A stretch of 63,982 nucleotides of DNA, filler included, from Guillardia theta CCMP2712 (taxonomy: Eukaryota; Protista; Cryptophyta), in assembly GCF_000315625.1 (NCBI RefSeq). It is 6 parts of 6 records of this genome, joined end to end, with 100 filler letters (N's around TTAATTAATTAA, not from the genome) between each part and the next. Parts side by side here need not be neighbours in the genome. Positions count along the whole stretch, not along the records: positions 1 to 21,001 come from NW_005434445.1; 5 more parts are not named here. One strand, 5' to 3'. The notes beneath the pieces are model-generated. The model ran no database searches, had not been told where the DNA came from, and saw only the letters and a list, made by a program, of their open reading frames with translations. Position 1 is the first letter of the stretch, and each line of letters begins with the position of its first letter. Below are positions 2,877 to 20,793 of the stretch, piece by piece. The translations under genes were made by a program, and so were the position numbers.

Positions 2877-5800
2877 CTAGAATCTCCAAACACTCCTGCA
2901 GTCATGTAAATCTTGTCTTCTACCTTTAGTCCCTGTCCACACGTGTCTGCGTGCACAAGGGTAGTGATTAGTCAAATTCAAAGTGAACCAAAAACAACTT
3001 TACCCCGAAGTCTGCTTCCTTTTGACTCCATTGCTACGATCATTTGGCTCGTCGAAAACTTGAAACGATGTAGGACTTTGATCGTTGAAAACGTCATCAA
3101 AGTGTTCATCATTTACACCTTCACAAGTATCAAACGAGAATCTCATCAGATTTTCGTGCAATCCAGGATCTGTACGCGAATTGTTACGACAGAATTTCTT
3201 CCAAAACATCACCTTCAATGTCGGAAAGGCTGTATGGTATACGAGAGAATTGAATTTCATCATGAGGTGACCCCGACACCGCACGACATGCCTGTGACCA
3301 GTCTGTCCCGTGCTGGGGCAATTTTCTGTCACTGCCTCCTACGTTGACTTCTTGAAATTGAATTTGATTTAAGTCCTGATCTCTTGTGCAACCACTGTCA
3401 ATGAGCTTCCACTCTCTTTGTACAAAGGAATTAGTTGAAAAGAAAAAGTCGAGTGGTCTTTGCGGCAAGATTTTCCCAAGAGCCGACCGAAATGTCGGAT
3501 CATAGGCCGTCTGAGCTAGAATATTTTCAATTCCTAGATCAAATTTCTCCATTGCATCCAGAATTTCATGAATCATGAAAGTGTTCAGGCTGGGGAATAG
3601 ATGAAGGGTTTCTATGTCTAGATCATCTCGTGGAATGCTCCCACACGCTGGTCTTGCTTGTAGATCATCTTTGTTGCAAAGGCATACCATCTGGTTGCTA
3701 GGGATCCACCCTGCCTGTTCTCCACACGTGCTCTCAATTGCGATGCGCACACTCAATGCGAGCTGACGCAAGTTAAACACCTTCGATTCAAGTTAGACTT
3801 GGAGCAACTCTTTCATCACTCACCTGACGCAAATGAATTTTCACTCCATAGCATTCGAAGATGCCAAACAACTTCATCCACTCTTCACCATCTACGCTTG
3901 AATCAGCAGCTTGACCAACTTGAGTCCGAATCAAGATCCAAATGTGATCGCAAGCGCTGCAGATGAGGAACTTCAAACTGTGCTACACAACCAAGACGTG
4001 AAGCCTCAAATCAACCTTGCCAGGTCTAATATTTGAAGGAGAAGAGAATTTACACCTTGAAAGCAGCATAAAATTATGGTTTCAGGAAATGTTCAGTATT
4101 TGTCTTTACCTGTCTCAATTTGATCTGTAATGCTTGTTTTTAGGTCTTCAAGATCCTTGATACTATCATCATTTCATAAGGAAGGCAAAATTAACCAAAA
4201 AGCAAGGATACAATACATTATGCAAGCATCCAGCCCAATCAGTATGTCACAGCGCAGATATGCATTTCCGAAAACATGAATATTTTCTTGTTCCATGCAC
4301 TTGATAAGTTCCTCACAACCCTGAATTTCTTGATTTACGTAAATCTCAATTTTAGTAGACCTTGGAAAGAAAGCATTACTTTACAGAAAGTCGAATCATT
4401 CACATTTATCAAGTATAACCGGTGCAAGATGAATCCACAAGCATCTTCTGGCAAGTCTCTCCACAGATGTTCTGCTTTTGTGACCACTTGCACTTGGTTG
4501 TCATAAGACTTTGCTCCAGACATGAGAAATCTGTCTTCGATAAAGGGCTCAACTGTTTCCAGGACAACAACATGATCGCAATAATCTTGGTTTAAGAGTA
4601 GTTTGACTCCAGAACTTGGCTGCTCAAAAAGAATGACAAGCCGAAAGTGAGGCATGTATTCTTGGCTCAACTGTAGAAATGCATGCTCTGTAAAAACAAG
4701 TACTTTGTTCGATCTTGATTCCAAAGAGTTTTTGCAATCTTTCACTCTCATTTTCACGTCGCGAGCACAGTAAAATTCAAGAACAATTGGCAATCCATAC
4801 AGTGCAGTTGAGATATCGTGGAAGAGAATGCTTGACTTTACCAGAATCAAAGTCGTTGGATCAATCAGTTTGCTTTCCTGCTAAATTTTAATATGTCAAA
4901 GTTTCAGTAAGAACACGTCAGAGGTGAATCTAAACCTGATTAGCAATAAGCGACCTTGTCACCTCAAACTTTGGATGTCGTTCATTTTGATCTTGCATTG
5001 AATTGAGTCTGTACAAAATCTTGAAATTTGCAAACCATGTAAGGAGATTGTTTGCTTAGTCAAGTTTCACCTCTGACTTAATGAGATCGGGCGCGATTGT
5101 ATCTATCACTTGTTTCCAATTTAGATCCTGTTATCAACGATTTTTCAATCTCTTTCAAAGCTTTCTGACAAAGCAAGGTGTTACCTCGAGTGCAGATGCA
5201 ATAAATAAGGCCGAGACGTGTGAGCCATAGTGCATCAGAAATTTTTGGCACTTATTCAAGAGATACACCAACATAAGGGTAGACCATGTTGAAATAGCTG
5301 TACATTTTTCGATCGAGTTCTTGGATTTGTGAATGTTTGAACGAGTTTTTTCAGCCATCGCAAGAATGTAGTTACAGTCACATGAAATGGAAAAAAAGTC
5401 GTGCCTTACTTCGTTGATCTCGGCTAGTTTTTCCAGTAATGCGATGATTATGCAACGCAAAATGTAGTTTGTCAATGCAAGCGCAGAGTTGCTTGAGACC
5501 TGCACTTTGATCTCATTCATACCATTCTCGAGTTGTTTTCCAGAGCCTTTCAACAAAGAGGTTTCATTGAATGATGTCAAGCCCTTGGCCGTCATGAACA
5601 TGTCCAGATCTTCTTCAAGACTAGTGTTAATATCGCCAATTTGGATATCATTTTCCACTTCAGATTTGAGGACGGCATCATTTGCATTTGCACATTGTTC
5701 GGGTTGGACCTCTTCGTCCTTGATTGTGTCCTTGAATTCTGGTACCTCCTCTTCAGGATGTTCAAGGTTTTGTCTGTTTATGTCTGGATCTAGCAGTGAA

Positions 5801-7113
5801 ACACCATGACTTTCTGTATCAAACTCAATCAAGTACTCATGAATCATTTGAAGAAATCCTGTTGTAGTAGGATGGTTTTTTCGAAGTTCACAAGTACATA
5901 GCGATTGAAGCAAGTGATCTTCAATGCCTTCTAGGAACAAGTCATGGGGATCATCGGTTTTTAGAAATGCTGCAATGAGTTCCGGAGGGCAGCTGGCATG
6001 ATCATAATCTTTTGATAGTTTCAATACGATTTCAAACTTGTTGCCATCACACATAGTTTTCTCATCCTTTGAATGTAAAATTGTTTCATAGTCTGTGAAT
6101 TTGTTCAAGGGCCTTGAAGTAAATATCTCCATTTCATTCAAGAATTGAGCTGATGTCCGAGGAGAAAACAATTCCTCGAGATCGATAAGAGGTGGAAAAA
6201 GCGAAGACAGGTCATTGTCAATCGATTGTTGTTTCTTGTCGTCAGTCGATGTATGATTACACATTGCTTCAAGGAGGAGATCTTTACCAGCTTGCTCAAC
6301 ACAGCCTTGACTTGAAAGATGTAGATGATTGTCACATTTTGTTATCATGTCAAATTCCATGGTAGCAGCCTCGACCTAAACAAAGAAATTTATTTTGATA
6401 AGTGGAAACTGGTTAAAAATTACCAAGATTAAGTCCATTGGTCTGTCTCGTGGATTGATGGTATCATTTCTATAAAATGTGCTAAGGGGTTCTGAAGGGT
6501 TGACAAAGAAGGTTTCCTTGACGATGGGAAGGACATTGATTGTATTGCAAAACCAAGCATGCAACGGCTGTGACTTCTCCTCCTTTGGCATCGCAAATTG
6601 TGCAAGGTAGTCTTCATTTGCAAAGTTCAAACGATTCCTTTCAAGGCAACATGCCGTTATCTCAAGATTACTGTCGAAAAGCACGGGACACAACATGAAT
6701 TTTTTAGATCTGAGTATTTTGGTGGAAGTTTCAATCAATCCTGTTTCTGCTCTCTGCACTGCAGGTGAGCCTGTTCCATTTTCTCCATCCATGACATGTT
6801 TCTGTGCTCCTCTGTACAGCACAGAAATGCAGCTATCATATGATAACTCTACTTCTCTTAAATCTTGCGCCTGTAATGATGCATCAATCGCCTCATTGCC
6901 TTGCGAGATGCCAATATCTGGTAAGGTCAATGTCAGGAATGCAGCTTTGAGTTCCTGCGGGTCCCCTTGAGATTCTTCCTGTATACAGCAGTTCGCAAGT
7001 TGTTGTTTCGAGTGCATTTGATATCCGTCAGCATGCAAGTCTTTCATTGCCTCCACCATCCCGCCATCATCCCATACTGGCGCTGCTCGCGGCAGCTTAC
7101 AAGCTGCAGCCAT
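2877..7113 (-). CDS. Large multi-exon protein, probably SHOC1/Zip2-like (XPF-like meiotic crossover factor)
   Basis: Long minus-strand exons (6376-7113, 5155-6360, 4335-4850, 3184-3780, 3000-3332) are separated by short introns. An exon near 4220-4325 reads EELIKCMEQENIHVFGNAYLRCDILIGLDACIMY, and a downstream exon reads IETLHLFPSLNTFMIHEIL. As I recall them, these resemble the SHOC1 'E.EG.QVVER....VD.I.S...C..WY' and 'FL..FPS.NP..AQ.IL' segments. Confidence 0.6.
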
Positions 7114-7631
7114 GGACCCAACCCACAAACTTGCGAAAGCCCGCCAAACATTCGACCCGGCGGAGGCCCCCGGTCGGAAGCGGCGGGCCGGGCCCGGGCG
7201 TGACTGGACTCGTAGTGCGCCGTCGGAGGGCGCTGGTCATAGTGCTCATAGTAATAACCGTCACATAACGGTCGGTCATCAGCTGAACGTGCCCAGTCTC
7301 TGTTCCTGCTCAGGCCCTACAGAGAAGGTCGTAAGGGGTGGGGTACTCGCAAACTGTAAAGTCTGTGGCATGGGTGGGGTACTTGACCATCTAACAGTAC
7401 TAGTCGAGATCCCTTGGTACCCCGTTCACCCCTCTAAGTTGCTCACCACCCTACCCTACTTTCCCCAAAGTCACTTTCCTTTAAACCTACTGGCTGGCGA
7501 AGATGGAAGAGGGTGGAGACAGAGGAGGAGCTACAGAGAGCTGAGATGAGCTAGAAGACTCAGGACAGGAAGCTAGCAAGAGCAAGAAGAAGCTCAGAGA
7601 AGGTTCGAGGAAACCCCCATTCGTGCGGAGG

Positions 7632-10600
7632 ATGCATCATATTCCTGATCATCGCAGATCAAACCAAGAAGTTGCTGCGCAAGTTTCTCCCCGTGGCCCG
7701 TATTTGTCACCTCTGCCACGAGTTCCTCAACATCCTCACGTTAAAAACGTCTCGGGGGAGCAAGTCTTGAGCCTGGCTCCTCCATCCCCGACTATTCGGA
7801 CGGGAAACCCGGGCGCTCTGAGGAGCTTGAGAGCAGAACTCTTTCATTTCTTCCTCTCTTACAGGGTCTCGACCGATGGAAGTTTGGTAGAAGGATTGTA
7901 CCAAGAGATATTGAGCATGTCCATGGACCAGCGTCCCCTGCCTTTCGGCGCGAGGGGAACATGGCCACGGTGTGCGGAGAGGCCTTTCCGTGAAGTTCAG
8001 AATGGAGTGAAGGGCTTTCTGGACAAATTCTGTCTGGTGGATGGTAAGGACTGGGAAGCAGGGTTCGTGCTGGGCCTTGTACACTCCTTGCTGTTTGTTC
8101 CGATGCTATCCTTCTACGAAGAACTCGACGAGACAACACAAGTGAAGCGCTTCACCGGATCCCTTGGTGGCCTGGTTGAGCTAGGTCACAGCGATCGAGT
8201 TGACAACGTGTTGCTGGAGTACATCATAGCGATCGAGCTCTGCCGCAAGGAGGGTACACATGTGCAATCTATCTTCCCCATCCTCCTCAGTCCCCGCAGA
8301 GACGACGGCACCTTCTCCGAGTTCTTGTGGTCGAGCTTGCAGTTGTTGCCAGAAAAGCCCTCGCACCTGACCAACGAGAGAGCAGCCATGATTCTTGCCA
8401 TGCTCGACGTGGAGGAGAAGCAGATTGCACAGATGAAGCAGAGAAGCATCAAGCAGACGGTCGAAATGATCCTCAAGCATCAGGCCTGCAAACTGTCGGA
8501 TATGAAGCAGGACGATCAGGTGTACGACTTCTGTGCCCGCAAGATACTCGATGTTGTCCTCAGAGACATCGAACGCCTGCAGCTGGACCCGAACGACTTC
8601 GCTTTCAAGACGCCAGGAGGCAGCGAGGTACTGCAGTGGCTCAAGGAGCGAGGTCTGCTGGGTCTGGCTCCCATGCTTGTCAAGCATCACGTAGACTCGC
8701 TGAACAAGGCGGCCAACCTCACCGACAGCGACATCCTCGACATTTTTCGATCCGAGCGGAGCAAGCAAGACGAAATGTCCTGCCCCAAGGGACAAGAGCT
8801 GTCTCTCCGTCTGGCTATCGCAGATCTCAGAAAGGACAAGCGGGCAAAGCCATACTCGCAGCGACTGTTGGACTTCCGGGACTCAGCGACGGCCATTGGA
8901 ACAGCTGTGTGGACCACAAACGCGATAGAGATCGTCTGCTCCAAGTGGCAGGGGCAGTACATGTTTGCTGTGCTGGCACTTGTATGCGCTCTCATCCCCT
9001 TCTTCACCCTGGGCGATAAACTTCTAACCACCTGGCAGTCGACAGACTACCATGTGGTGCTGTGGTTCAAGGTCGTCTACTACTTGCCTTTCTGGATCTC
9101 AACCTCCCTTGTTCTCGTGAAAAGTGTTTACGAGGCGAGGTATGTACGTCCGCACAAGGCCCGGGCCACCCTCAAGGCTCAAAGTTTCCGCTGGAACTTG
9201 TTGTTCTTGATAGGAGTTGTCGCCGAGATCGCTCAGATTCTCGCAGGCCAGCATGAGCCCGGCTGGACAGTGGCCGATACCTTGAGTGTCAACGGAATCG
9301 CCTTCGAGCTCATGTTGTTTCTGCCAGCATCTATGCTCGTGTACCTGACTTTCGAGTATCGAGAGGAGTACTGGGTGCCTAGTTGGCTGATGCTTGCGAT
9401 CGTGGTATCTGTCACGTACTCGTTCATTTGGAGAGCGTTCCTGTGGTACTTCATGACGACCGTCTTCGTCGCTGTCTTCACCTCCTCGCTCTTCACCTAC
9501 TTTGTTGTCATCCGGATCAAGACGATCGGGGAGGCTCGACGGAAGCTTGGTTTCAATGTGAAGCGGTACCTCGAGGAATGGAGTCACTGCCTTCAGGCAA
9601 CAAGCAGCGTCGACGCCCCTGACGTAGGACGCGACTTAAATCATAAGGGAGTCGGTCGGGTCCTGCACAGCCGTCGGCTGCACCCGGTCATGAGCGTTGA
9701 GCCGCAGGCCACTCGAGGAGCGCTAGAGGTCTTGTGGGAGATGACATCAGCCATAGAGCTACAGCTAGAGCAGCAGTATCGCTCCTGCCAAGCTCGCGTT
9801 CATCCCTGGACACGATTTTGGCAGGACAGGAACAAGGGCTTCGGGCGATTCAAGAGCAAGGAAGGCGAGAGGGGGTACGGCAAGATCAGGCAGCTGTCCT
9901 CAGACTTGGACCAGCTGTACCAGCAAGCAAGCACCATCAACTCAGCTGTCCACGACCTCATAGCTGATCTCCTCACCCCGCTGCAGCATCACAGCGGCAG
10001 CTCTCATCTTGTCAACAAGTATCCCATGCTCGTCTACGGCCCCGTCAAGCAACCTCAACGCGCCATCGAGAAGTGCGTGAGGTCGTACAGGCGCGACGTC
10101 GGATGCCTCACTGACTTGGTTCGCTGCACTATCGTGGCCGAAAGCATGGAGCAGCTGCTGCAGGTTCTTCATACGATCCGATTGCGATCGGTCATCGGCA
10201 TCGCGCCAGTCAATCGGGACGAGGACTGCAAGCTGTCTGTGGATGCAGCCAGTCAATCCGCTAGCGAGAGCCTTCCGGCACAAGCTGGGAACCAAAGTTT
10301 CCTCTCACGCGCACAGCAGCTTGTCCTCAGCAGTCTCAGCAGCAGGAGCAGGAGAGAATCAGAGGGAGAGAAGCAGCTGGAGCTGATGAGGGGTGAGGAG
10401 CAGGAGCAGGAGGAAGGGGGCAAGAGCGAGAGGTTCTTTCGGATAACGCAGGTTAAGAATCGGTTTCACTCGGACAGCCATCACTTCAATCCTATGACTG
10501 GCTACCGCGACCTCTCCCTCAACCTCGAAGTCGGATGGACTTTCAGCCGAAACTCAGTCATCTTTTTGCCTGTCGAGGAGTGGGAGCAGGGAGCGGTCGA

Positions 10601-10753
10601 TCGATACATCATCGAGGTTCAGGTAAGAGCCATGCTGGCCTTTGCTGCGATGACGGTACCTGCCAGATCCACTTCAAAGGTTTCTATGACATCATGAGCA
10701 AAGCAGGCTTCCATGACTTCTACTGCGAATGGAGAGATATCATGTCTCGCTAA
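7632..10753 (+). CDS. TIR + SAM + multi-pass transmembrane + RelA/SpoT-like nucleotidyltransferase fusion protein; one intron at 10623-10666
   Basis: 1024-aa ORF. TIR motifs: FHFFLSYRV, FLDKFCLVDGKDWEAGFVLGL, LFVPMLS, DNVLLE, IFPILL. SAM: EVLQWLKERGL...LTDSDI...GQELSLRLAIADL. About 6-7 hydrophobic helices at ~8960-9520. RSH-synthetase motifs: GPVK..RAIEK..RSY, LTDLVRCTI, VKNRF, TGYRDLSLN, IEVQ. A phase-0 GT-AG intron joins IEVQ to IHFKGFYDIMSKAGFHDFYCEWRDIMSR*. Confidence 0.85.
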
Positions 10754-11429: not shown

Positions 11430-12030
11430 GCTTTACCAAACGCATCGACGTAATAGTTCTTGTCGGTTTTTTTAGCACCTCAATCTGTGACAAGCGTCTC
11501 AATTACTTGTCCTCGTCCATATAATTTTTCTGCAGCTCTTCTCCAAGCCTCATGGTCTCCTGTATCTCGCTCTCACACAGATCTCCTGTATCTCGGTCTC
11601 GTAGAGCCATGTCGCTTCGCTGCTCAACATGTTGCTTGATCAGCCAGGACGTTCTCGTGTTGTTTGATCTCGGCTGCGAGCTCCATGAACCACCGCACAA
11701 GATGCCTGCCCCATGGAAGCCAATGACAAGACATGCAGGTTTAGGGCAGGCCCTGCCAGTCATGCAGCGAGCAAGATGAATACCAACGACACAAGGCGCA
11801 CCATCACAGCACTACAAGGTCGTGCCAAGCGCCGTTCGAGGAGAAAACAAGTCCTCGAGATGGATAAGAAGGGGAAAAAGGTTGTGACCCATTGCTTCAA
11901 GGAGGAGATCTTTACCAGCTTGCTCAACACAGCCCTGACTTGCAAGATGTAGATGATTGTCACATCTTAGTATCATGTCAAGAAGTTCACGTTTTGAGCT
12001 CCTGCGGGTCCGCTCGAGATTCTTCCTGCA
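11430..12030 (-). pseudogene. Degenerate, internally deleted copy of the 5' part of the SHOC1-like gene
   Basis: ~11840-11980 matches ~6160-6352 (e.g. cattgcttcaaggaggagatctttaccagcttgctcaacacagcc; peptide CDNHLHL.SQGCVEQAGKDLLLEAM). ~11993-12030 matches ~6945-6985. Further weak peptide similarity (CSAVMVRLVSLVFILL vs CTAISTWSTLMLVYLL) spans different frames and stops. Confidence 0.75.
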
Positions 12031-12416: not shown

Positions 12417-13006
12417 ATGGCAACGCAGCATCCTGCCGCTACAGGGCCAACCGTCCTCGTCCAAGCTCGCCCCCGTGACTCCGAGCGCCGCGATCATGTT
12501 CGCCTCGACCTCGCAACAGTCTCTTCCCTCTATCACCTCAGGCAGATCGAAGCTGCTCAGTTCTTGGTAAGCCTTTGGTTTCCTCATAATGTTTGCGAGA
12601 TGATATGGGATTTGGGCTGACGGGGAGGCGGCAGGGCATCTCGCTGACGTCACTCAAGAGCGCATGCCGGAGACTAGGTGTAGAGCGATGGCCTTACCGG
12701 AGGGAGACAGCACAGGAAGCTGTAGAAGTTGTACCGGACAGAGACGATGGAGTAGGTCCAGCCTTCGAGGATGCTGGGGGGGTTGGACTGGAACCGCAGG
12801 AAGAAGGCGAAAATGGGGTGGAGGAAGGGAGCGAGATGGAAGGAGGATGGCTTGAGTGGTACATGTCTTTTCCCCTGGGAGGAACTGACGATGATAATGT
12901 TGAGAATAGCGGGCAGCAGATCTCTCTAGGAGCAAACCTGCACAGGAGCCAAGAAAGCCAGGGGGGAGAAGGGGAGGCATGTGTGATGGGAGCCATTCAT
13001 CTATAG
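12417..13006 (+). CDS. RWP-RK domain transcription factor (2 exons; intron 12567-12634)
   Basis: The spliced peptide LDLATVSSLYHLRQIEAAQFL|GISLTSLKSACRRLGVERWPYRR is a canonical RWP-RK domain. The intron is GT-AG and phase 0. The C-terminus is acidic. Confidence 0.88.
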
Positions 13007-15850: not shown

Positions 15851-17573
15851 TTAAGATCAAGACCTCACTCGGATCATCGCATCTGTTGACGGGGGTCTCT
15901 CGGGTGTTCCACTCTCATGCAACAAGCTTTCGTCCGTTTCGGACCTGTTTCGAGTGATCAACATTACAACCAACACGAAAATTCAATGGCATCGCTCACT
16001 TGTTTGCTTGAAAGCATTTGCAGCAGTTCCCCATTCCTGTCACGGTCAGTAAGTCTTAAAATGCTTCTTCTCCGCTTTTTACACTACCTTCCGACCAGCC
16101 TTGATGATTTGAACCCCGCAAGATCAATCAACCTTGGCAAAAGCTCTTGTTCTACAGGCAAATATCCTCAGCCTGGCTGGAATCATCAGTTAGAATCCTC
16201 GATTCTGATGTGCACCACTACTAGACTATTCAGCTGGGAGACTCAATCGAAGCCACGCAAGGCAGCTAGGATCACCAAGTTGAATTTAACTCACCCAATC
16301 CTAGCCCCATTTCCCCCCCCTCCCCCCCCTCCTGTTTCTTGTTGCCTCTTCCTTCGCATCTCAAATCGTTCTTTAACACTAAAACACCATGTCTCCTCTC
16401 TCCTCGCCAAGCGCTCCATCGATGCAATTATTTCATCTCTTCTCGATTTCCTTGCTCTCTCGCGCAGTCAAGCGCTTCCGATCCTTACCTCTCTCTCGCC
16501 CTGCTCTGCCCCTCCCTCTACTTCCAGCCTCCTCTGTCGACATCATGCAACCATTTCCCTCCTCCCCCCCCCTCCCCCCCCTCCCCCCCCCCCTCCCCCC
16601 CTCCCCCCCCAAAAATGTTCTCCCTTTCCTTCCCCTCCCTCTCTGCTTCTAGCGCATTTCCGCGGCCAAACTTTTCCCATTGCCTGTACGCTACCTACCC
16701 CCACCACCGTTCTCCACCTTTCGAATCCTGTTCATAACCCCTCATAAATGACCCCACCCTCAAAAAGCTTTTCAGTTTTGACCCCCCACCCCGTCTTTCT
16801 ATGCTGACCACCGTCTCAGACCAATATTCTGGTACTAGGGGTCCCCAAATTTTGGGAACAATTACCCACCCCATTCCCTATGGAAGTACCCCACACTTTT
16901 TTTTTTATACGCCTCCTTGACTACCCTCGTTCGTTCCACCCCTGCCCCCACCCTTTCGCCCCACCCCCCATCCCCACCCTTCTATCCCCAATCCAAAGAC
17001 CTACCCCACCCCTTGGTTTAAAGGGCGATGAGGGCTGAAGAAAGTACCCCTTACCTTCAGTACCCCTCATCGTTGCCTACCCCCACCCTCTTGAAGATAC
17101 CACCCTACCACCACAAATATCTCAATTGTACTAGTTTCACCTCCACACGAACCCTCTTCAGTCCACTACCGGGTCAACCCTCTACCCCACCCACCCTCAC
17201 GGACCCGTAAATAGCTTTGGAAATGGGGGTACAAGCTCTGGGGCAGGCCTGTTTATTCTGGAAGCGCCGCAACTTCGACTGCTGGCACTGCCGCTCCGGC
17301 GGCCCCGCGGGCGGGCCCGTCGCCGATGGTCCGGAACTTGACTCATTCAATGTGAAGGCCGCTCGCTGAGTCGGATCAGTGGCGGCGCACTGCGGCGCAC
17401 TGGCGAGTCATTCAACATCTGAAAGCCGGAAGGGGGGTGGGGGGTCGGCTCACGCTCAGCCCGCATGCTGGCCGCCGGCGACCCGGACTCTCGGACGTCA
17501 CTCACAGCGGCGGCTCGCCGGAGTCGGGACACGGCATCCGATCCGAGGCACCGTGTGAGGACTCCGGGCCGTA

Positions 17574-17842
17574 GCTCAAAGTCTCAAAGTCTCAAAGTCC
17601 CAAAGTCTCAAAGTCTCAAAGTCCCAAACGGTCTCAAAGTCTCAACGTCTCAAAGTCTCAAAGTCTCAACGTCTCAAAGTCTCAAAGTCTCAAAGTCCCA
17701 AAGTCTCAAAGTCTCAAAGTCTCAACGTCTCAAAGTCTCAAAGTCTCAACGTCTCAACGTCTCAAAGTCTCAAAGTCTCAAAGTCTCAAAGACGGTCTCA
17801 AAGTCTCAAAGTCTCAAAGTCTCAAAGTCTCAAAGTCTCAAG
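17574..17842. repeat. Octamer tandem satellite (GTCTCAAA)n with GTCCCAAA/GTCTCAAC variants
   Basis: Roughly 30+ units are directly visible. Confidence 0.95.
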
Positions 17843-18752
17843 TTTGGGGTATGCTCCCTTCTGGAAGGGATCAAAAAATCTTTCCTCCCCCTCCACCCCA
17901 CCCCCCTTTATCTGTTTCAATCAAGGTCGATTGAGGGGGTACACTGTTCTCCAAGTTCCCACTGAGAAATATCCGGTAGAGGTTGCCATGGTATCGTCAG
18001 CATCCACATTTTATATTGACGAAATGTCTCCGCAATAAAATTTCAATAAATATCAAAGGATTCCTCATTAAAATATTGCCTTTTGCAAAGAGCCTTGCTG
18101 TAAACTTCGGTTTAGTTTACTCCATTTTGTGAAAAGTGTGCAGGGCGGTGACCCCCTTCGGGAAATGCAACTGATGAGATACAAGGAGCGATCCCCCACT
18201 CTAGGACGAGGGGAGGTAGTGAAGGAGCAAACAAGTGCGAACAGAGCAGAGAGAAGAGGAACAGAGAGAAGAGGAACAGAGAGAAGAGGAACAGAGGAGC
18301 AGAGAGGTCAAGAGCAGAGAGAGGAGGAGCAGAGAGGAGGAGAGCAGGGAGCGCACTGAGAGCAGATAATTTAGAGAATGATCAGATTCAAGTTAAGAAA
18401 AGTACCGCATTGAGGTACATATCCGATGAGAATCAGAACAATTCCACTTCTGTCTCAAGAAGCTCCAAATGAACCTGTATGAGGATGACAAGACACCCTA
18501 GGAAGTAAAATGTAACGGAAAAGGCACTTTTGCTGAAGTTGTCAAGGAGAATGACAATCATCTCCCATGTGGAGCGGCGAAAGTTGAACTCATGTCATCA
18601 GTGGCTTGTTTGCGATGAGAAAGAAATGTCTGTTTTGTGCTCGAGGGTTTGCAGGAGGAAGGGCAAGTTGTGTTAGAAATGAAACAGGGTAGGAGAGTAA
18701 CAGGGAAGGCAAAGGAGCGTTGTGGTTGAAGTTGACAACTTTCTTCCCTCAG

Positions 18753-20793
18753 ATGGTCCTCGAAGACAGGTCCTACTCCACGCGTGCTGAAGACATCATC
18801 AATGCCGTCCAGGCTGTTGATGATGACCTGTCGAAGCTGGCTCTCGACGAGCTCCCAGACGACCAGGATGAGGAGGTGGAGGAGACTGAGACTGAGACTG
18901 AGACTGAAGTTGGAGGGAAGAAGCAACGAAGCTGGCTCGGGAGAGTGGGGAAAGGGATCTACAGGAGGAGTGTGAACCTCGGGAAAGCGGCGGGGATTTA
19001 TCGGACAAGAGGCAGACGAGGAGGTGAAGGAGCTACAGGCGATGATCCAGTCATGCCGCTCGCCGCTGGCGTANNNNNNNNNNNNNNNNNNNNNNNNNNN
19101 NNNNNNNNNNNNNNNNNNNNNNNNNNNNNNNNNNNNNNNNNNNNNNNNNNNNNNNNNNNNNNNNNNNNNNNNNNNNNNNNNNNNNNNNNNNNNNNNNNNN
19201 NNNNNNNNNNNNNNNNNNNNNNNNNNNNNNNNNNNNNNNNNNNNNNNNNNNNNNNNNNNNNNNNNNNNNNNNNNNNNNNNNNNNNNNNNNNNNNNNNNNN
19301 NNNNNNNNNNNNNNNNNNNNNNNNNNNNNNNNNNNNNNNNNNNNNNNNNNNNNNNNNNNNNNNNNNNNNNNNNNNNNNNNNNNNNNNNNNNNNNNNNNNN
19401 NNNNNNNNNNNNNNNNNNNNNNNNNNNNNNNNNNNNNNNNNNNNNNNNNNNNNNNNNNNNNNNNNNNNNNNNNNNNNNNNNNNNNNNNNNNNNNNNNNNN
19501 NNNNNNNNNNNNNNNNNNNNNNNNNNNNNNNNNNNNNNNNNNNNNNNNNNNNNNNNNNNNNNNNNNNNNNNNNNNNNNNNNNNNNNNNNNNNNNNNNNNN
19601 NNNNNNNNNNNNNNNNNNNNNNNNNNNNNNNNNNNNNNNNNNNNNNNNNNNNNNNNNNNNNNNNNNNNNNNNNNNNNNNNNNNNNNNNNNNNNNNNNNNN
19701 NNNNNNNNNNNNNNNNNNNNNNNNNNNNNNNNNNNNNNNNNNNNNNNNNNNNNNNNNNNNNNNNNNNNNNNNNNNNNNNNNNNNNNNNNNNNNNNNNNNN
19801 NNNNNNNNNNNNNNNNNNNNNNNNNNNNNNNNNNNNNNNNNNNNNNNNNNNNNNNNNNNNNNNNNNNNNNNNNNNNNNNNNNNNNNNNNNNNNNNNNNNN
19901 NNNNNNNNNNNNNNNNNNNNNNNNNNNNNNNNNNNNNNNNNNNNNNNNNNNNNNNNNNNNNNNNNNGGGAGGGGAGGGGAGGGGAGGGGAGGGGAGGGGA
20001 GGGGAAGGGGAAGGGGAGGATGAGGGGAGGGGAGGGGAGAGGGATCTAGGAAGCAAGTGGTTGAGGACGGTGGAATGCTGGCTCCTGACGTTGCTTCTGC
20101 TAGAATGAACCTTCCCAGCCATGGTTTGCGGGAGGTCTCGTTCAAGGACGGGACGACGATCGAGATCGGATTTCCTGACAACCGCATCAACAATCTCTTC
20201 TGGGGGGACATGCACCATGAAGTTCTTGGCTCTCAGCTCTTCGTCGATGCTCGCAACGGCCTGCGGGCGAGGTTGCAGTTCAGCCCGCCGGGGAGGAAGG
20301 GACTCCCCTCGGACTACTTCGAGGGCGTCATCGAGCGGTTCGACCCGGCCAAGCCCCGAGGAGGAGGGGCAGGTGGTGTCGACGATCGAGGGGTCGTGGG
20401 TTGGCTTCTGCGACTTTGACAAGGTGAGAGGAGTGGGTGTGAGGAGGAGAGGGGGGGAGGGGGCGGGGGGGGGAGGAGGGAGGATGGATGGCGAGGGGTT
20501 GGGGGGGATGGGGGACTAGGAGGGGAGAGGAGCAGAAGCGGAGGGGCGGGGAGAGGAAGGGAAGTGTGATGGAGAGAGGGCAGTAACGTGAGGAGCAGGT
20601 GAGGTATTGGGACTTCCGTACCTTCAGCAAGGCTACTTCCTCCTCACCTCCTGCTCTCCTCCCGTCGGACTCTCGGCTCCGCCCTGACCGCAATGCGCTC
20701 GTGGAGAAGAATATCAAGCTGGCGCAGGCCGAGAAGCTCCGGCTGGAGGAGGAGCAGCGGCAGCAGAGGAAGCTGCGTGAGCAGAAGAAGTGA
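18753..20793 (+). CDS. Oxysterol-binding protein-related (ORP) protein; middle lost in gap 19074-19966
   Basis: INNLFWGDMHHEVLG, SDYFEGVI, VSTIEGSWVG, and the OSBP C-terminal signature LPSDSRLRPDRNAL...AQAEKLRLEEEQR...R ending at 20793. Joining to the acidic exon at 18753 is assumed. Confidence 0.8.

Follow-up and report, generated by a model that had tools for sequence, protein, structure and literature searches.

A cryptophyte gene joining a SARM1-like TIR domain, a SAM domain, six membrane helices and a RelA/SpoT-type synthetase, and its predicted receptor family in Guillardia theta

The window analyzed here, a stretch of 63,982 nucleotides in all, joins six parts of the genome of the cryptophyte Guillardia theta CCMP2712 (GCF_000315625.1). 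Its first part (positions 1 to 21,001, from NW_005434445.1) holds a gene on the plus strand whose product carries a TIR domain, a SAM domain, six transmembrane (TM) helices and a RelA/SpoT-type synthetase domain, in this order (Table 1). This architecture is confirmed, and the folds, the intact active-site residues, purifying selection and transcription are established. The four modules and their order had been proposed from the DNA in an original prediction, with which both the family profiles and the AlphaFold models agree.

Gene structure and domain composition

The gene had been described as one open reading frame, which holds for the single frame at 7632-10622; a 44-nt intron and a second exon of 28 codons follow. 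The public model GUITHDRAFT_121453 (P0164), whose UniRef name is merely 'SAM domain-containing', has the identical splice (900 aa of exon 1 plus 28 aa) and starts at Met98 (7923), later than the ATG at 7632, so that strand βA of the TIR domain is missing from it; the first Met of a paralog aligns near 7632. In the motif of exon 2, the Arg is found in 45/45 and the His in 39/46 of the aligned relatives. The two exons were searched separately, never as a joined sequence.

The spliced joint is visible in one run (X3), and the contigs of runs X1 and X2 carry the intron (10623-10666) unspliced. These contigs span the gene and leave the intergenic gap uncovered, which suggests, short of proof, that they derive from RNA. 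The frame also breaks directly 3' of E-x-Q in five fetched paralog loci, and intron retention, which would remove the last conserved helix, is a possible control point. That the stop upstream of the gene might be an assembly error is argued against by the X1 contig, which begins at 7498, is identical to the genome and gave the idea no support. A prokaryotic contaminant was rejected, as the genome and the paralog are both G. theta, with spliceosomal introns, and so was a merging of two genes, given the single frame and the full-length relatives in MMETSP and EukProt.

A search of 1.8 billion representatives yielded 536 relatives. The profile check suggested with the original prediction has a split outcome: the single window sequence has no TIR, SAM or RelA_SpoT match in Pfam or among PDB sequences, and relatives match all three (TIR_2 in 15/83, with a best E value of 4e-10, SAM_2 in 11/83 and RelA_SpoT in 6/58). 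Searches of PADLOC and NCBIfam gave weak single matches and nothing more, and pattern scans meant to find close relatives in viruses or prokaryotes returned nothing, the query peptides being poorly conserved.

The TIR domain, whose bounds are now set at about 7833-8582, was modeled by AlphaFold2 with a predicted local distance difference test (pLDDT) score of 94. The best VIA-align match of the model is the TIR domain of SARM1 (9hq0; Z 13.8, root-mean-square deviation (rmsd) 2.5 Å, 140 residues aligned, 23% identity), that of TIRAP reaches Z 13.5, and Foldseek gives a probability of 1.0 to RUN1, L6 and SARM1. A TIR-only profile likewise places SARM1 first among PDB sequences (E 3.6e-4). This alignment stops at D-W-V, just before the Glu, and ungapped extension places D-N-V-L-L-E on D-W-V-H-K-E, which equates Glu196 with SARM1 E642 (numbering from chain offsets); its codon had been correctly located at 8217-8219. 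F74, S76, Y77, R78, D131 and E196 are in register with SARM1 F565, S567, Y568, R569, D594 and E642. The Glu of helix αC, the S-Y-R of βA and the Asp of βB that mark a TIR active site are thus present, and they are conserved in the family. In E. coli, another TIR protein of G. theta, L1IYH1, depletes NAD+ and produces cyclic ADP-ribose (cADPR), and Glu1141 is listed for it in a table of the same preprint (bioRxiv 10.64898/2026.04.20.719644); in a by-eye comparison with printed output, Glu196 sits at the motif position of Glu1141. With its intact catalytic residues, the TIR fold is predicted to be of the NAD-cutting type. Related long TIRs occur at C63:189353-190003 and C33:44217-44774, in frames of 1300-1400 aa with no synthetase match, and one of these may be L1IYH1.

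The SAM model matches the SAM domains of EphA2 (Z 8.8, rmsd 2.0, 62 aligned) and CASKIN2 (also Z 8.8), and the SAM profile matches Eph SAM domains (best E 7e-4). Going by SAM biology alone, this domain may oligomerize head to tail. The membrane block had been credited with six or seven helices; six emerge from family-averaged hydropathy, and the topology is assigned from this and from Lys/Arg peaks. The peaks flank the block, upstream of TM1 and downstream of TM6, and also occupy loops 2-3 and 4-5. Three relatives have an insert of ~300 aa between TM1 and TM2, which in P0026 holds an F5/8 type C (F5/8C) domain, a domain that is normally extracellular. From the peaks and this insert, the enzymes at both termini are assigned to the cytosolic side, so that the topology is probably N-in/C-in with both enzymes on the same face, a point that the original prediction had raised for checking. 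The block found no match in the Atlas. No signal or transit peptide was detected (maximum hydropathy 0.8 across the first 60 aa), the latter as claimed at the outset.

The synthetase core starts at ~9903, not at ~10030 as first placed. The fold prediction was made on the paralog P0001, not on the window protein; the two are 82-85% identical in their catalytic halves. The top 11 VIA-align matches of this model are all RelA/SpoT homolog (RSH) synthetases (Z 13.1-7.7), including B. subtilis SAS2 (13.1), RelP (12.6), Rel (11.1), Tas1 (10.6) and CapRel (9.8), with small alarmone synthetases (SAS) at 13.1-12.4 and other nucleotidyltransferases at 6.4 or below. The two fold comparisons called for originally, with SARM1-TIR and with RelP/RelQ, are thereby both borne out (Z 13.8 for the former, and 13.1-10.6 for RelP/RelQ/Tas1 with the paralog). 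At the sequence level, the sole significant match of the synthetase profile among PDB sequences is the Pseudomonas toxin Tas1, which makes (p)ppApp (E 4e-7).

The synthetase residues K806, R810, K814 and R817 (Syn1), D828 and R831 (Syn2), Y959 and R960 (Syn3/G-loop), and E995 and Q997 (Syn4) are invariant in the 52-58 aligned sequences, except that position 959 is Tyr or Phe in 54/55. In FaRel2, the donor-ATP/Mg site comprises K66, K74, R77, D90, E145, Q147 and Y128 (PMC11782079). Their counterparts by motif spacing are the invariant K806, K814, R817, D828, E995 and Q997, with Y959 for Y128. As in Tas1, Syn1 has Pro at the position of FaRel2 R64 and Arg at that of S70, and Syn2, D-x-x-R-x-T, agrees with Tas1 by comparison with printed output, the window protein reading R-C-T. 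Apk enzymes are reported to differ from (p)ppGpp synthetases by a Syn2 with R-x-T, a Syn4 with His and a Syn3 that lacks S-x-H (PMC12226406). The (p)ppGpp-type signatures (S-x-H in Syn3, A-V-R in Syn2, I-R in Syn4) are absent from the window protein, which has D-x-S, R-C-T and I-H, the last two agreeing with the Apk-type R-Y-T-like Syn2 and x-H Syn4. The earlier reading as a RelA/SpoT-type synthetase is therefore upheld as to the fold and sharpened to Tas1/Apk-type signatures, not (p)ppGpp-type ones, and on these motifs the acceptor is likely to be an adenosine.

Table 1. Features of the receptor gene (window positions) and contigs carrying two-synthetase genes (last two rows).
Feature	Position	Strand	Remarks
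Upstream open reading frame (uORF), 13 codons	7503..7544	+	in-frame, ends TGA
Second uORF, 2 codons	starts 7546	+	
Exon 1, 997 aa	7632..10622	+	single open frame from ATG 7632
Extended SARM1-like TIR, aa 68-317	7833..8582	+	fold + family profile
Predicted catalytic Glu196	8217..8219	+	Glu in 75/80 aligned relatives
SAM domain, aa 327-403	8610..8840	+	fold + profile
Six TM helices, aa 441-458, 478-499, 519-535, 556-573, 583-597, 607-628	8952..9515	+	
Juxtamembrane and pre-synthetase helices	9516..9902	+	conserved K-x-R-Q motif
RelA/SpoT-type synthetase core	9903..10622	+	profile + paralog fold
Poorly conserved insertion in synthetase	10197-10427	+	disordered in paralog model
Intron, 44 nt, GT-AG	10623..10666	+	directly 3' of Syn4 E-x-Q; spliced in run X3
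Exon 2, 28 codons/28 aa	10667..10753	+	last synthetase helix, conserved H-x-x-Y-x-x-x-R
Two-synthetase genes, e.g.	C86:20818-23487, C12, C56, C5, C30 (x3), C206 (x2), C1 (x2), C62		
Two-synthetase genes, continued	C40, C50, C103, C226, C48 (L030), C64, C18, C11		

The family in G. theta and its range

In the G. theta CCMP2712 genome searched (87.1 Mb, 669 contigs), the SAM-6TM-synthetase core is present at about 21 loci, a family absent from the original prediction. Among the loci read, four have an intact TIR site, one retains the Glu although the rest of its site is altered, 11 are without the Glu, and in four the N-terminus is unrelated. Every copy readable there retains the Syn1/Syn2 core K-R-K-R-Y-D-D; Syn3 and Syn4 are more variable among paralogs or lie in later exons, and were aligned in part. 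Since no inspected copy has lost this core, whereas the TIR is without its Glu in 11 copies and replaced in others, the synthetase is probably the core output, and the TIR an optional, exchangeable module. The coupling of NAD cleavage with alarmone synthesis that had been proposed is consistent with the intact catalytic residues of both enzymes in the window protein, but an obligatory coupling is weakened by the 11 copies without the Glu and the four with another N-terminus. The degenerate TIRs placed on a quick tree form one clade (Shimodaira-Hasegawa-like approximate likelihood-ratio test (SH-aLRT) 100), which fits one loss with later expansion and led to the rejection of 11 independent TIR losses. 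In four copies (L038-L041, on C424, C100 and C8), an uncharacterized N-terminal region of ~420 aa with no relevant Pfam match replaces the TIR, and in an environmental relative (P0061) its place is taken by HEPN_DZIP3 and a kinase.

A second class comprises at least 20 loci with two synthetase domains ~2.1 kb apart in one frame of 1000-1500 aa, and no TIR match was found at these loci. The one locus of this class that was read, in part (L030), shares its last membrane helices with the family (E 6e-6 vs 0.1 for the best shuffle) and has a soluble stretch between membrane helices; its membrane block lies between the two synthetases, and its Syn1-Syn2 region is still closer to Tas1. No homology was detected between the outer domain of the two-synthetase proteins and the F5/8C insert. 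Their layout is reminiscent of adenylyl cyclases with two catalytic domains. More than 40 G. theta genes carry a Tas1-like synthetase domain, and those inspected encode membrane proteins with an intact catalytic core. Pfam RelA_SpoT detects none of these genes and finds only two HD-bearing RSH genes (C47 and C24); the HD profile PF13328 likewise matches only this pair, which are separate, canonical HD-plus-synthetase genes, in keeping with the earlier claim that the window protein has no HD domain.

Each domain is under purifying selection. Ratios of nonsynonymous to synonymous substitution rates (dN/dS) against the C71 paralog, rough values since dS is 1-2, amount to 0.13 for the TIR, 0.10 for the SAM domain, 0.11 for the TM block, 0.10-0.12 for the synthetase halves and 0.71 for the insertion. 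The search of cryptophyte and other protist sequences envisaged in the original prediction has turned up full-length relatives among MMETSP transcripts, in Hanusia phi and in numerous environmental contigs. The same domain order recurs in dozens of independent relatives of full length, Proteomonas has one synthetase-bearing fragment, and every named full-length relative is a cryptophyte. Uncharacterized, synthetase-only look-alikes in foraminifera, diatoms and ciliates, one cluster of which has TPR repeats, are leads only. Near-identical local pairs of family members on C100, C49, C4 and C117 (inverted) and on C37 (tandem) suggest recent local duplication.

Around the gene itself, a long multi-exon gene (~3000-7128, minus strand) runs divergently; those pieces of it that were tested match nothing in Pfam or the PDB, and it has an unconfirmed, by-eye resemblance to SHOC1/Zip2-type meiotic proteins. 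Pieces of this upstream minus-strand gene recur, rearranged, at 11834-12028 (vs 6155-6353 and 6930-6981, 85-94% identity), so that direct repeats of the neighboring gene lie on either side of the receptor gene. Other features are a DnaJ plus thioredoxin gene (823-2900, +), an RWP-RK domain gene (12593-13006, +), a tandem array of ~30 copies of an 8-nt unit, GTCTCAAA, and its variants (17573-17840), and a gene at 18720-20700 that is broken by a run of N and bears an unconfirmed, by-eye resemblance to oxysterol-binding proteins.

Relation to known systems

The closest similarity of the synthetase is to Tas1/Apk1, a type VI secretion system effector of P. aeruginosa (PDB 6OX6), and to Apk2 of MuF phage toxins, with which the family has the Syn1, Syn2 and Syn4 signatures in common; the Syn3 G-x-N of Tas1/Apk is unmatched. 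In contrast with those toxins, the family is eukaryotic, membrane-embedded and fused to SAM and TIR domains, and a PAAR or MuF domain for delivery is absent from it, nor was an immunity gene seen next to the window gene. Tas1 and L1IYH1 were compared from printed output only. The likeness to SARM1 comprises the best TIR match by fold and profile, the active-site residues including the catalytic Glu, and the position of the TIR beside a SAM domain. SARM1 is, however, arranged ARM-SAM-SAM-TIR, whereas the window protein has the reversed order TIR-SAM with a single SAM and no ARM sensor, six membrane helices, an extra synthetase and a TIR of ~250 aa with insertions. L1IYH1, from the same species, appears by eye to have the same long type of TIR, with D-x-V-L-x-E around the catalytic Glu, but it is a separate protein of 1337 aa with its TIR at the C-terminus.

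The nearest eukaryotic precedents are found in fungi and protists. Some fungal NOD-like receptors (NLRs) have an N-terminal RelA_SpoT domain, proposed to be an immune effector domain (PMC4986451), and unplaced SAS of the divRel group are present in fungi, Dictyostelium and diatoms (PMC3153485). Both likewise represent RSH synthetase domains in eukaryotes outside the plastid. The fungal NLRs nevertheless consist of NACHT or NB-ARC plus repeats and are matched by Pfam RelA_SpoT, whereas the window family has no such NTPase, has a membrane core and is missed by this model in the G. theta genome. The plastid RSH1-4 proteins of plants and algae have the synthetase fold in common with the family, which differs from them by its Apk-type motifs and, as originally stated, by the lack of HD domain and targeting signal. 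Membrane adenylyl cyclases and receptor guanylyl cyclases also combine a membrane block with one or more cytosolic messenger enzymes; their catalytic fold and their product are unrelated, and the parallel is an analogy only. The protein is not SARM1, a plastid RSH, an Apk1/Apk2 toxin or a fungal RelA_SpoT-NLR, because each comparison fails on a defining feature. Literature searches returned no account of the architecture or the family, most subscription journals and supplements lying outside their coverage. The family falls outside every known system tested. It is apparently undescribed, as the original prediction had held for the architecture, and its function is a prediction.

Proposed mechanism, alternatives and significance

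The family is predicted to be a cryptophyte-expanded set of polytopic membrane sensors with a constant SAM-6TM-synthetase core. At rest, the protein would be embedded in a membrane, its two enzymes facing the cytosol. Clustering via SAM would be triggered by a cue within the membrane or at the outer loops, where some relatives have an F5/8C domain. The Tas1-like domain would then use ATP to pyrophosphorylate the 3'-OH of an adenosine acceptor; (p)ppApp is the most likely product, tRNA-CCA being the other candidate acceptor. In copies like the window protein, clustering would also assemble the TIR, which would cleave NAD+ to cADPR/ADPR. The outcome would be a defense or stress response, brought about either by a messenger signal or by ATP/NAD depletion and arrest. 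Module swapping is typical of conflict or defense genes, and the behavior of this gene family, namely its expansion, its swapped modules and its partner domains (TIR, HEPN, F5/8C), points to defense or non-self sensing. As a whole, this mechanism is given a slightly better than even chance (roughly 0.55).

Several observations weigh against it. Conservation is overstated by the alignments, whose members were collected for their similarity to the query. By fold alone, RelP/RelQ outscore Tas1. The Syn4 His is present in only 18/51 relatives, and Syn3, Y-R-D-x-S, corresponds to neither G-x-N (Apk) nor S-x-H (RSH); in the Y-R-D-L-S-L-N stretch of the window protein, the Asn sits two residues beyond the G-x-N position. 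Furthermore, motif swaps in Apk2 left its specificity unchanged, indicating that motifs alone do not set it (PMC12226406), so that the acceptor cannot be read from sequence. The genome yielded no stand-alone HD hydrolase of the kind that a reversible messenger might call for, which leans toward the protein being a terminal effector or toward degradation by another type of enzyme. The outer loops of the window protein are short, and no ligand site is therefore evident in it. Finally, expression looks low, with 45 reads in the raw RNA run, part of them probably derived from paralogs, and two contig sets keep the intron.

One alternative is that the same receptor would make cytosolic (p)ppGpp or an undescribed nucleotide product. 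The best fold scores are to RelP/RelQ, which are (p)ppGpp synthetases, Syn3 departs from either known signature and carries an Arg that is invariant, and both promiscuous and G-specific enzymes are found among toxSAS-like synthetases (PMC12691689). Nevertheless, the guanine-recognizing S-x-H is absent and Syn1/Syn2 follow Tas1, while the fold scores partly reflect chain length and C-terminal helices; this is the foremost of the alternatives, and an improbable one. Slightly lower odds are given to a translation blocker whose synthetase, after sensing infection, would pyrophosphorylate tRNA CCA ends in the manner of FaRel2 and CapRel. The adenine-type acceptor signatures would also suit a CCA end, CapRel reaches Z 9.8 and conserved basic helices precede the core, but the Arg64/Ser70 Syn1 canonical for FaRel2 (PMC11782079) is absent from the family, the FaRel2 complex reaches only Z 5.5 and the sequence profile matches Tas1 alone.

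It is unlikely that the TIR is the main output, as in a SARM1-like NADase receptor whose synthetase would merely bind nucleotides or be regulatory. The prevalence of the Glu in the aligned TIRs (75/80) and the TIR-SAM adjacency that recalls SARM1 would fit such a receptor; however, the TIR is degenerate or replaced in most G. theta copies, the catalytic residues of the synthetase are invariant, and the two-synthetase loci, at least 20 in number, have no TIR match. A decaying gene or chance fusion, which low RNA depth, the intron-keeping contigs and the upstream in-frame stop might suggest, is already largely refuted by dN/dS of ~0.1 in all four domains, the Hanusia relatives and the dozens of full-length relatives.

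Returning to the adenosine-directed synthetase receptor, a more far-reaching proposal is that cryptophytes run a cytosolic messenger system based on (p)ppApp, or a related 3'-pyrophosphorylated nucleotide, through dozens of Tas1-like membrane receptors. This proposal is tentative and less probable than the mechanism itself. In it, some receptors would couple (p)ppApp to TIR-made cADPR within one polypeptide, and, if true, it would define a eukaryotic receptor class parallel to the nucleotide cyclases. According to a 2022 review, (p)ppApp is unreported in plants or algae (PMC10107265), and according to a 2021 review, ppGpp has been noted in eukaryotic cell lines, the synthetase responsible being unidentified (PMC8118318). 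A sequenced, cultured alga with more than 40 Tas1-like synthetase genes makes the question of a cytosolic eukaryotic alarmone directly testable. The proteins would link TIR NAD cleavage and toxSAS pyrophosphate transfer, two ancient immune chemistries, in one receptor, they are candidates for protist defense against viruses or bacteria, and they may point to a nucleotide alarm signal so far unreported in algae or plants.

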